From: Iphione sp. A-MEVVRFRX5
Taxonomy: Eukaryota
Direction of reading: 5' to 3'
Length of the DNA: 64,000 nucleotides
Assembly: GCA_976226885.1 (NCBI GenBank)
Contig: OZ320313.1
Location: 171,430,001-171,494,000, forward strand
Of this stretch, positions 16,197-19,200 are shown one piece after another (the stretch's first letter is position 1; every line of letters starts with the position of its first letter). The notes under the pieces were generated by a model, which saw only the letters and a program-made list of their open reading frames with translations, searched no databases and had not been told where the DNA came from. The position numbers and the translations under genes are program-made.

Positions 16197-16235
16197 GCTA
16201 ATCCATGCTTTTTTTCTCTCTCTCTGCAGGTAAGT
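16197..16235 (+). other. Candidate recursive (ratchet) splice site: branch-point-like CTAAT, polypyrimidine tract, CAG|GTAAGT
   Basis: gctaatccatgctttttttctctctctctgcag|gtaagt: a consensus 3' splice site directly abutting a consensus 5' splice site. Confidence 0.55.
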
Positions 16236-16257
16236 CTTTTTTTTTACCGAACACTCA

Positions 16258-16277
16258 ATGAATAGCAAAACGAGCGG
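16258..16277 (+). CDS. Candidate Homer micro first coding exon V6 (MNSKTSG), inside a recursive-site-type exon 16230-16277
   Basis: ATG AAT AGC AAA ACG AGC GG|GTAAGT, phase 2. Strong acceptor at 16228-16229. Confidence 0.4.
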
Positions 16278-19200
16278 GTAAGTGTGGGAAACTAGCGCCA
16301 GGTGGCGTGGCAGTACCACGAGACGCAGGTAAAGTGCTTGTCCTTACTCCAGGCTATATTGAATAATACATGGCGGAGTGGATGAAAGCAGGAGACTGGA
16401 GGAGGGGGGAGGAGGAGCTCCCCCCTTACATTCCTCGAATACCTCCTTCTCCCCACCCCCCCCCCCCCCCGGACTTCCGTGGTTGTGCGGTTCGTCCATC
16501 CCTCCCTGTGTTAGTGGCACTGGCTTTTAAATGAGGAGGAGGATTTCATGTTTACATGTAAACTTCCTTCATAATCGTAATCCACATGGCTTCATTCCCT
16601 GTCGTCATGTAAATATGCCAGAAAACCGGCCTAAACGGTGATTAAGATTAATTAATATCCAGTGGAGGGGTCGATGTTCGTATTGGGAAAAAATAGGTTG
16701 TGGGTAGGGATTTGAGAAAAGTTACATTTACATTTGCCAGAAATTATTCATCCTATTTTTAAAACCCGATTAAGCGCATCCTGCCGTCCCAGCCACGACT
16801 ACCACTTGGGTCTATTTTCAGAGGTCATTAATGGCCACTAGGCATTCAGGCCAGACCAGCAGGGGGTAATTGTGTCGTTTATGTCGTCTTCTGATTGTTT
16901 CTCCATGACCAAGGATGCAATCTTATGTCCATCGTTTGGGTTCTTATCCTTCCGTTTACCGCATTAGCAGGTAGAAAGAAGTGGTAAACTGCTATTTTTA
17001 CCGTGTTTCCTGTCACCCATATTCTACTTCACCTTAGTTTTCACATAAGGGTTTACATGTACATGTAGACTTTCTATATATGGATTGATAAAATATAGAT
17101 AGATTTCCGGAAATAAATGCGGACGCATCTCCCTCAGTGAATTGCGTCGTCTCGTAGATTATCGCCCGAAGCGGGATTTCCTCTTAATGCATGAATAAAT
17201 TAAACTTGTACCGAAAAAAAATCATTTTGAAAAGGAAGTCCACGTGAATCAGACGACATTTCGTCCCCCCAGAGACAGGCCATACTTTTTTACGGACTAT
17301 TCTGAAGGATATACGAGCGTATAGCATAGAACTCGATTGAAAGTTGATCTAATTGTTTTTATAAAAGTAAAATACGGAAGATCAAAGTGTATGGTCCATC
17401 TTAGATCTCTGTGACAATTATGGACTGGTGACATAGGTGACATAGGTGACATTGGTGACAATTATGGACTGGTGAACATTGCGGTACACTGGCTTCGGTG
17501 TAGATTGTCGGGAAAAAAAACACACACACACCCACACACACACGAGGGAGAGAATGAGGCACACATACACACCCACGAGAGGAGAGAGTGGCAGGTGCAC
17601 ACACACATGCACACATGCTAGAGGGAGAGAACGAGACACACACACACACACACATACACACACACACAAGAGGGAATGAAAGAGGCATGCACACATNNNN
17701 NNNNNNNNNNNNNNNNNNNNNNNNNNNNNNNNNNNNNNNNNNNNNNNNNNNNNNNNNNNNNNNNNNNNNNNNNNNNNNNNNNNNNNNNNNNNNNNNNNNN
17801 NNNNNNNNNNNNNNNNNNNNNNNNNNNNNNNNNNNNNNNNNNNNNNAAAACTCCAACCGGCTGACTCCATCTGTGAACATAATGGATCTGTCCCATCTGA
17901 GCCTAATTGATACCCGGACTGTGTACTTTTTTTTAAGCCGTGGGCAGATCTCTCTGGGTATATATGGACTTTGTCCCTAGTTTAATTGTTGCATTCAAAA
18001 CTTGAAGATAGTTGAGAAAATGGGGGTCGGGGGGTTTTCCCATAGATTCTCCCAACTAGCTAGACTGGTACTGTTACTCAGTACTAACCAGTCCACGTTT
18101 GTTTCGTGTAGCTGTTTGAAGAATGTTTCTTCAGAATTTCAGGCCATAAGATGTTCTCACGAGATTTCACCTGAGGTATGATAATACGTGTACTCACGAA
18201 CAATGTACACCATTAGAACTTCTTTTTCGTGCTTATTTTAAATTATCCCATGAATCACAAGTAAATGTATATTCTCACTGATTCCATTTACTTATTTAAT
18301 TACATTTAGTATTTAACGGAAATTGCTATCTGGATGGATCATAATCTTGTACATGTATTTACATGACAAGACTGAACACCTATGCAATCCGCTAAAAAAC
18401 AAAAAGCATCTCAAGAATCGCTCATGTACAAGCCCCAGCTTCCAGGATAATGACACGTGATCCTCCATTCTAATTATAACTCTCTAACTGGGGAACTTAG
18501 TACATGTGCTTTGAGTTACCAATTGGTGTGCGGTTTTGCCAGAACTCAACCTGGTGGTATGTTGCCCAGCCCTCCATTTCTTGCTTGTATCCCCCCCACC
18601 ACCACCTACAGGAGTGGGGGGGGCGGGGGGGGGGGGTTAGGATCACTCCTCCCGGACCGTCCGACCATCTGTCACAACTTATAACTTATAACTGCCAAAC
18701 CAATGTATCAAATAGCTTTATTTTTTAATAGGGTATTTTAACTGTATGGACGTTTGGCGCGAGGTTAGTAGCGGTGCATTTGAACTGATCTTAATATGGA
18801 AAAATGAGAAACTCATTGCTTAGACTGTACATACACATATATACATACATACATACATACATACATACATACATACATACATACATGCATACATACATGT
18901 GGGGATGGCAAGGCATGGATCTATGTCATAGTGCGCTTACCCAAGCAGTACTTATTATTAGTTCCACTTGATTGGCTGGCTGGTAGGGGACAATGGACCT
19001 TGTAGGTCCACCTGTTTGCTGTAGTCATTGTACATGGTGGAGTTTCTGTTTACACCAGGTAGATGGTACAAGTCCTCGTAGAATAACGACGATCTTGTAT
19101 TGAAGGGACAATGGAGTACACAGAACCTATACTCCATTAAAAAAAGTTAGTCCTTCTTCTGTCAGTAACTGCACTAAAAAAATGTCCTCTCCAGACCAAA

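Follow-up and report, generated by a model that had tools for sequence, protein, structure and literature searches.

A candidate fly-type recursive splice site with a short cryptic exon in the putative long first intron of a Homer gene

To our knowledge, recursive splicing has been experimentally shown in flies and vertebrates only. Here we ask whether a compact array of splice signals at positions 16197-16335 on the plus strand of a 64-kb stretch of animal DNA (contig C1:171430001-171494000, hereafter the window), which lies upstream of the EVH1 exon of Homer, marks a point at which a long first intron would be removed in two steps. In Drosophila, the ratchet point (Y)nNCAG/GTAAGT (a slash within a motif marks the splice junction throughout) encloses a short (~50 nt) cryptic RS-exon closed by a downstream donor, and this RS-exon is recognised first and then removed through use of the regenerated donor (PMC8605326). 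The fly ratchet points in Ubx, kuz and Bx come from Burnette 2005, Duff 2015, Joseph 2018 and Joseph 2021, as summarised in PMC8605326. Judging from the sequence, we consider it likely that the site in the window is an intronic ratchet point like those of flies, that it encloses a short cryptic RS-exon, and that it lies in a long first intron of Homer, a single-copy gene.

Splice signals at the site

The layout can be read directly from the plus strand. A branch-point-like CTAAT occupies 16198-16202; its A precedes the acceptor AG (16228-16229) by 28 nt, and no other AG lies between the two. The 3' splice site (16208-16229) is made of an uninterrupted 18-nt pyrimidine run at 16208-16225 followed by GCAG, and 18 of the 20 bases before the 3' splice site are pyrimidines. 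Immediately adjacent is GTAAGT (16230-16235), the 5' splice site that would regenerate on joining an upstream exon at 16230. A second donor, CGG/GTAAGT at 16278-16283, would serve as the exon-defining 5' splice site of a 48-nt cryptic RS-exon (16230-16277), which contains an ATG at 16258-16260 and whose last bases are GG, in phase 2. A further donor-like CAG/GTAAAG follows at 16329-16334 (junction 16328/16329); its use would give a 99-nt exon, in which the frame from ATG 16258 runs into a TAA. The first-pass annotation had listed the CTAAT, the pyrimidine tract, the CAG/GTAAGT at 16229/16230, the GTAAGT at 16278 and the CAG/GTAAAG, and all of these positions are correct to the base. Juxtaposed 3' and 5' splice sites, a branch-point-like motif without an intervening AG, and a short RS-exon closed by a donor, all of them features of fly-type ratchet points, are present in the sequence.

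The site stands alone in its surroundings. The string AGGTAAGT was found once in the window when both strands were searched, the site is the sole YAGGTRAG with at least 16 pyrimidines among the 20 upstream bases in the window, and the 351 nt surrounding it are single copy genome-wide. An Rfam search of 14-19 kb of the window matched no family, and the predicted RNA folding of 16190-16345 is not better than that of shuffled sequence (z = 0.33).

The same signals could be read in another way, namely that 16230 or 16278 is used only as the donor of a first exon, with the CT-rich tract being its 5' UTR. A TATA-like TATATAAG at 16138-16145, ~90 nt before 16230, would agree with such a start, but TATA-like words are frequent in this AT-rich stretch, and no CpG island is present at 15-17 kb, in contrast to the other candidate first exons. 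Moreover, a first exon leaves unexplained why a branch point, a pyrimidine run and a CAG should stand exactly before GTAAGT, as well as why the layout recurs across the genome with a fixed spacing to the second donor (see below). We therefore regard a first exon at this position as very improbable.

Candidate first exons and the extent of Homer intron 1

Homer lies on the plus strand and is single copy in the genome, so that there is no paralogue for comparison. Its EVH1 exon, C1, spans 49585-49741 (its peptide opens with G and 13 further letters and ends in GSK), has a phase 2 acceptor (cag/G GAG CAG), holds no in-frame ATG, and is itself single copy and 94% identical to its best database relative. 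More Homer exons follow at ~51.8, 52.3, 56.7, 57.4 and 59.6 kb of the window. Directly after C1, at 49742-50690 (plus strand), there are ~12 tandem 86-nt copies of the end of C1, including its AAG/GTGAGT donor. The nearest full-length Homers in the database are those of a nemertean, a mussel, spiders and a sea star. When full-length Homers were sought with a profile, the matches listed (top 120) comprised fish Homer2 only and none from the host species, and a database search with the exons only gave no match above 85% identity and no host-species protein.

Homers of other animals begin with MGEQPIF, and a good ATGGG/GT exon was not found within the window. We then read 40 kb upstream of the window in search of a canonical exon 1. 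The best candidate, CAACATGGG/GTAAGT (tcaacATGGG/gtaagt), lies at L046:3931-3935 (contig C1:171403931-171403935), 26,069 nt before the window start, with an A at -3 and a G at +4. It has the 15-mer CAACATGGGGTAAGT in common with the annotated exon 1 of Lineus (ccaacATGGG/gtaagt, L042:9996-10010), and we favour it as the putative canonical exon 1 of Homer. With this exon as exon 1, intron 1 would measure 75,649 nt, and its two parts on either side of the site 42,294 and 33,355 nt. A weaker TAG/GTAAGT occurs on the plus strand at window coordinate -21271, 4.8 kb past the exon 1 candidate, with 14 pyrimidines among the 20 upstream bases and without a downstream donor; it was not included in the class of sites described below.

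A second possible start of the intron is V5, a 163-codon ORF at 13339-13829 on the plus strand, which lies inside a CpG island and ends in CGG/GTGAGT in phase 2. Its GC3 is 0.82 against ~0.6 for GC1 and GC2, resembling the constant exons of Homer, and V5 is a probable alternative coding first exon. From V5, the intron would be 35.8 kb, split into 2,400 and 33,355 nt. The first-pass annotation had proposed that V1-V5, at 6-14 kb, serve as first exons and that the first intron is accordingly 36-43 kb. A long first intron remains probable, and its predicted size changes: with the best exon 1 it would come to 75.6 kb, its start is more plausibly placed 26 kb upstream of the window than at V1-V5, and it is probably about twice as long as had been assumed. 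The site, which is on the Homer strand, would thus be near the middle of the intron instead of 2.4 kb past V5.

Another plus-strand ORF, 45134-45997, has 288 codons and a third-position GC of 0.87; it sits in the largest CpG island of the window, 3.6 kb before C1, and has a phase-2 donor, TG/GTAGGA, at 45996/45997. This ORF may be an additional alternative Homer first exon. A Pfam search of V5 and ORF 45134 gave no match, and neither is similar to the N-terminal extensions of other Homers. These data bear on the possibility that the site is real and belongs not to Homer but to another plus-strand transcription unit, such as a gene that has gone unrecognised or a non-coding RNA. Several CpG islands are present between -34 kb and +46 kb, and all of the Homer 5' exons are themselves predicted, which would leave room for such a unit; however, V5 and ORF 45134 are the only coding-like ORFs in the 75 kb between the exon 1 candidate and C1, and both end in phase-2 donors that fit C1. 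It is highly unlikely that the site belongs to a unit other than Homer.

With the site taken as a ratchet point in Homer intron 1, the two-step removal, which is probable from the sequence, would proceed as follows. The 48-nt unit at 16230-16277 would be recognised through exon definition, between an acceptor made of CTAAT, the 18-nt pyrimidine run and the CAG ending at 16229, and the GTAAGT donor at 16278. An upstream exon would then be spliced onto 16230; the canonical ATGGG exon is the best candidate for it, and V5-like exons of the window are also possible. The first segment thus excised would measure 42.3 kb if the canonical exon is used and 2.4 kb if V5 is, and a strong 5' splice site, xGG/GTAAGT, would be recreated at the junction. 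The recreated donor would finally be joined to the C1 acceptor at 49584/49585, which is the end of the second intron segment, so that the 48-nt exon and the remaining 33.4 kb would be lost and M-G-EQPIF would be left. We infer that, of the donor regenerated at 16230 and that at 16278, the former would win. In the V5 case, the regenerated donor is the same as the RS-exon donor from -3 to +6 (CGG/GTAAGT); because the two are identical over these positions, donor strength alone does not predict skipping for V5.

Occurrence of the motif across the genome

To judge how far the site exceeds chance, the composite motif was counted in the genome (1.18 Gb searched). Y14-N-CAG/GTAAGT has 37 matches, compared with 4 when the pattern is reversed and 4 and 8 with GATAGT and GTGAAT as permuted hexamers, which means a 5- to 9-fold enrichment over the controls. 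From arithmetic on the match coordinates, four same-strand pairs of matches are less than 200 kb apart, whereas ~0.1 would be expected by random placement. All of the 36 other sites were retrieved. Four of them are copies of one repeat, which inflate the motif counts and were therefore left out of the donor-spacing statistics, leaving 32 sites. The repeat is a dispersed family with a ratchet-point-like ...ttccacag/GTAAGTCCCCATAGTACATGC and, 32 nt further on, a GTAAG (three of the four copies have the complete GTAAGT), and its copies L015, L024, L028 and L031 lie at C2:82194201, C11:581608, C12:784959 and C13:101795589, respectively.

Among the 32 other non-repeat sites, 15 have a GTRAG at +25 to +60, in comparison with a background of 4% in equally long windows of the same loci (P = 4×10−13, binomial test), and several additional sites bear weaker donors (GTAGG, GTAAA) at that same distance. 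The RS-exons so delimited at the other genomic sites are ~31-54 nt long, a range within which the Homer donor at +48 falls. When the module was defined strictly, as Y10-N-CAG/GTAAGT followed after 20-55 nt by GTAAGT, the genome yielded 16, the Homer site among them, and the control yielded 0. We take the Homer site as more than chance because the motif occurs 37 times against 4-8 in the controls and the strict module 16 times against 0. The earlier proposal of a ratchet point with an exon-defining downstream donor, removing the intron in two steps, gains good support from these statistics and from the fit of the site to the class, and it can be inferred that the members of the class are recursively spliced and that Homer transcripts cross the site.

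It may be argued that splice-like motifs without any function have come together here by chance, since the site was picked by scanning all 64 kb of the window for notable features, a few of the 37 matches look like chance matches or repeat copies (L015, L024, L028, L031, L034, L037 and L038), and conservation of the motif is not demonstrable in the relatives examined, whose first introns are 23 and 7 kb. Against chance stand the counts in the controls, the 4% expectation for a donor at +25 to +60, the lack of any strict module in the control, and the position of the site on the strand of the gene and near the middle of its putative intron. A purely fortuitous juxtaposition is thus very unlikely.

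On contig C10, another chromosome, four plus-strand modules form a ladder at 31759725, 31794288, 31829917 and 31866101 (L047-L058). Neighbouring modules are 34.6, 35.6 and 36.2 kb apart, and the downstream donors of the four lie at +44 to +65. The two Homer segments, 42.3 and 33.4 kb, are similar to this step of ~35 kb. In the 200 kb read around one same-strand pair, coding-like ORFs were called with a crude GC3-periodicity filter, which picked just five short ORFs (44-70 codons) of mixed strand, none of which is an evident exon. One weaker site is present on the opposite strand of this C10 stretch.

Fate of the 48-nt exon and comparison with other animals

If the site is a ratchet point, the 48-nt exon would normally be silent, and it is necessary to consider whether it is an expressed exon instead. 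From ATG 16258 to the GG at 16277 it reads MNSKTS followed by GG, the beginning of a Gly codon; this phase 2 end fits the C1 acceptor cag/G GAG CAG at 49584/49585. The 48-nt unit joined to C1 would read MNSKTSG-EQPIF, just as the first-pass annotation had it, and this frame is borne out. Some or most Homer mRNAs might contain the exon and take their start codon from it, in which case it would either switch the N-terminus or serve non-coding first exons. Such a role would agree with the ATG being in the right phase, with the terminal GG that keeps a Gly before EQPIF as in the Homers of other animals, with the 16278 donor being equal in strength to the regenerated donor, with C1 having no in-frame ATG, and with the fact that some fly RS-exons are expressed (PMC8605326). 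On the other hand, ATG 16258 has T at -3 and A at +4, a poor initiation context, an exon of 48 nt would hold an in-phase ATG by chance in an estimated ~1/5 of cases, and the RS-exon lengths of the class do not favour multiples of three. Inclusion after any phase-2 coding exon reads GG/G TAA, an instant stop, and ATG 16258 is not needed given the canonical ATGGG/GTAAGT exon upstream. An expressed exon that provides the start codon is therefore unlikely. The switch of the N-terminus that had been suggested for the site retains its frame, while the poor context of the ATG, its frequency by chance and the stop after a phase-2 exon leave the switch itself weakly supported; switching through the 48-nt exon is possible but unsupported, and we consider it unlikely.

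The consequences of inclusion would differ with the exon joined upstream. Because of the GG/G TAA stop, the 48-nt exon would be a poison exon for V5 transcripts. Inclusion after the canonical ATGGG exon leaves a two-codon upstream ORF ahead of ATG 16258. These two outcomes could be combined in a regulated switch, in which the canonical exon, whenever the donor at 16278 wins, would give an M-G-stop upstream ORF with reinitiation 24 nt on at ATG 16258, yielding MNSKTSG-EQPIF, and in which the RS-exon would be a poison exon after V5-like exons, so that both dose and N-terminus would depend on the promoter. If true, the promoter used would determine, through one recursive site, how much of a synaptic scaffold is made and with which N-terminus, although we hold this to be quite improbable.

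Returning to the ratchet point, the Homer site can be compared with Drosophila in several respects. It has the same (Y)n NCAG/GTAAGT consensus, and its 48-nt unit is closed by a second donor, as is the fly RS-exon of ~50 nt. Fly ratchet points lie on the sense strand of long introns; here the strand is right, and the intron is deduced from exon candidates. As in flies, the content of the exon ignores the reading frame, and its inclusion would add a stop. Giant fly introns carry multiple, evenly spaced sites, to which the C10 ladder, found elsewhere in the genome, is similar. There are also differences: the host animal is not an insect, and its site is predicted from the sequence; the ratchet-point donor in flies is usually the stronger one, whereas at the Homer site the RS-exon donor and the regenerated donor are equally strong; and the Homer RS-exon holds an in-phase ATG.

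The RS-exons in long neural genes of vertebrates (Sibley 2015; Blazquez 2018, PMC6224609) share with the Homer site the exon definition via a downstream donor, the location, predicted for Homer, in the first, long intron of a neuronal gene, and the premature stop on inclusion, and in vertebrates, too, the outcome may depend on the upstream exon joined. However, vertebrates have few fully suppressed intronic sites (PMC8605326) and their large introns show little enrichment of the RP motif (PMC2773006), whereas the strong enrichment and the ladders in the host genome follow the invertebrate pattern. By sequence, RP sites are enriched in the large introns of insects and sea urchin, not in those of vertebrates (PMC2773006). 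The sea urchin is an invertebrate outside the insects, and the sense strand of its large introns holds several times more combined acceptor-donor sites than expected, likewise on sequence grounds; that study gives bulk ratios only, whereas our analysis describes one site of a named gene together with its RS-exon and segment lengths. Outside flies and vertebrates, this bulk motif enrichment in sea urchin is the published evidence that we found (PMC2773006).

At the level of sequence, the host genome has the full fly-type architecture, that is, ratchet points, RS-exons of ~45 nt and ladders with a step of ~35 kb. If confirmed, this would speak for the recursive removal of long introns via cryptic exons as an ancestral trait of bilaterians, and the Homer site would be a defined place for studying the choice between two equal donors. 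Because it is compact and lies in a neuronal gene that is single copy, the Homer site is also easy to test.

Homologous introns were also compared between the host and two relatives. In a related species, for which 25 kb upstream of its C1 were covered, only the exons align to the Homer locus, and an exon 1 candidate, aaatATGGG/gtgagt, is located 23 kb upstream of its C1. No strong site was found in this 23-kb first intron, where weak AG/GTRAG candidates lie at 52-55% of the intron, and no ratchet-point site was found in the 7-kb first intron of Lineus. Both introns are shorter than the 75.6 kb deduced here, and both relatives are distant. It was also observed that on a 1.35-Mb animal contig in a metagenome assembly (ENA ERZ24900295:ctg6582l, L003) the gene calls read TGA as sense, and that, with the standard code, stops occur within the called products.
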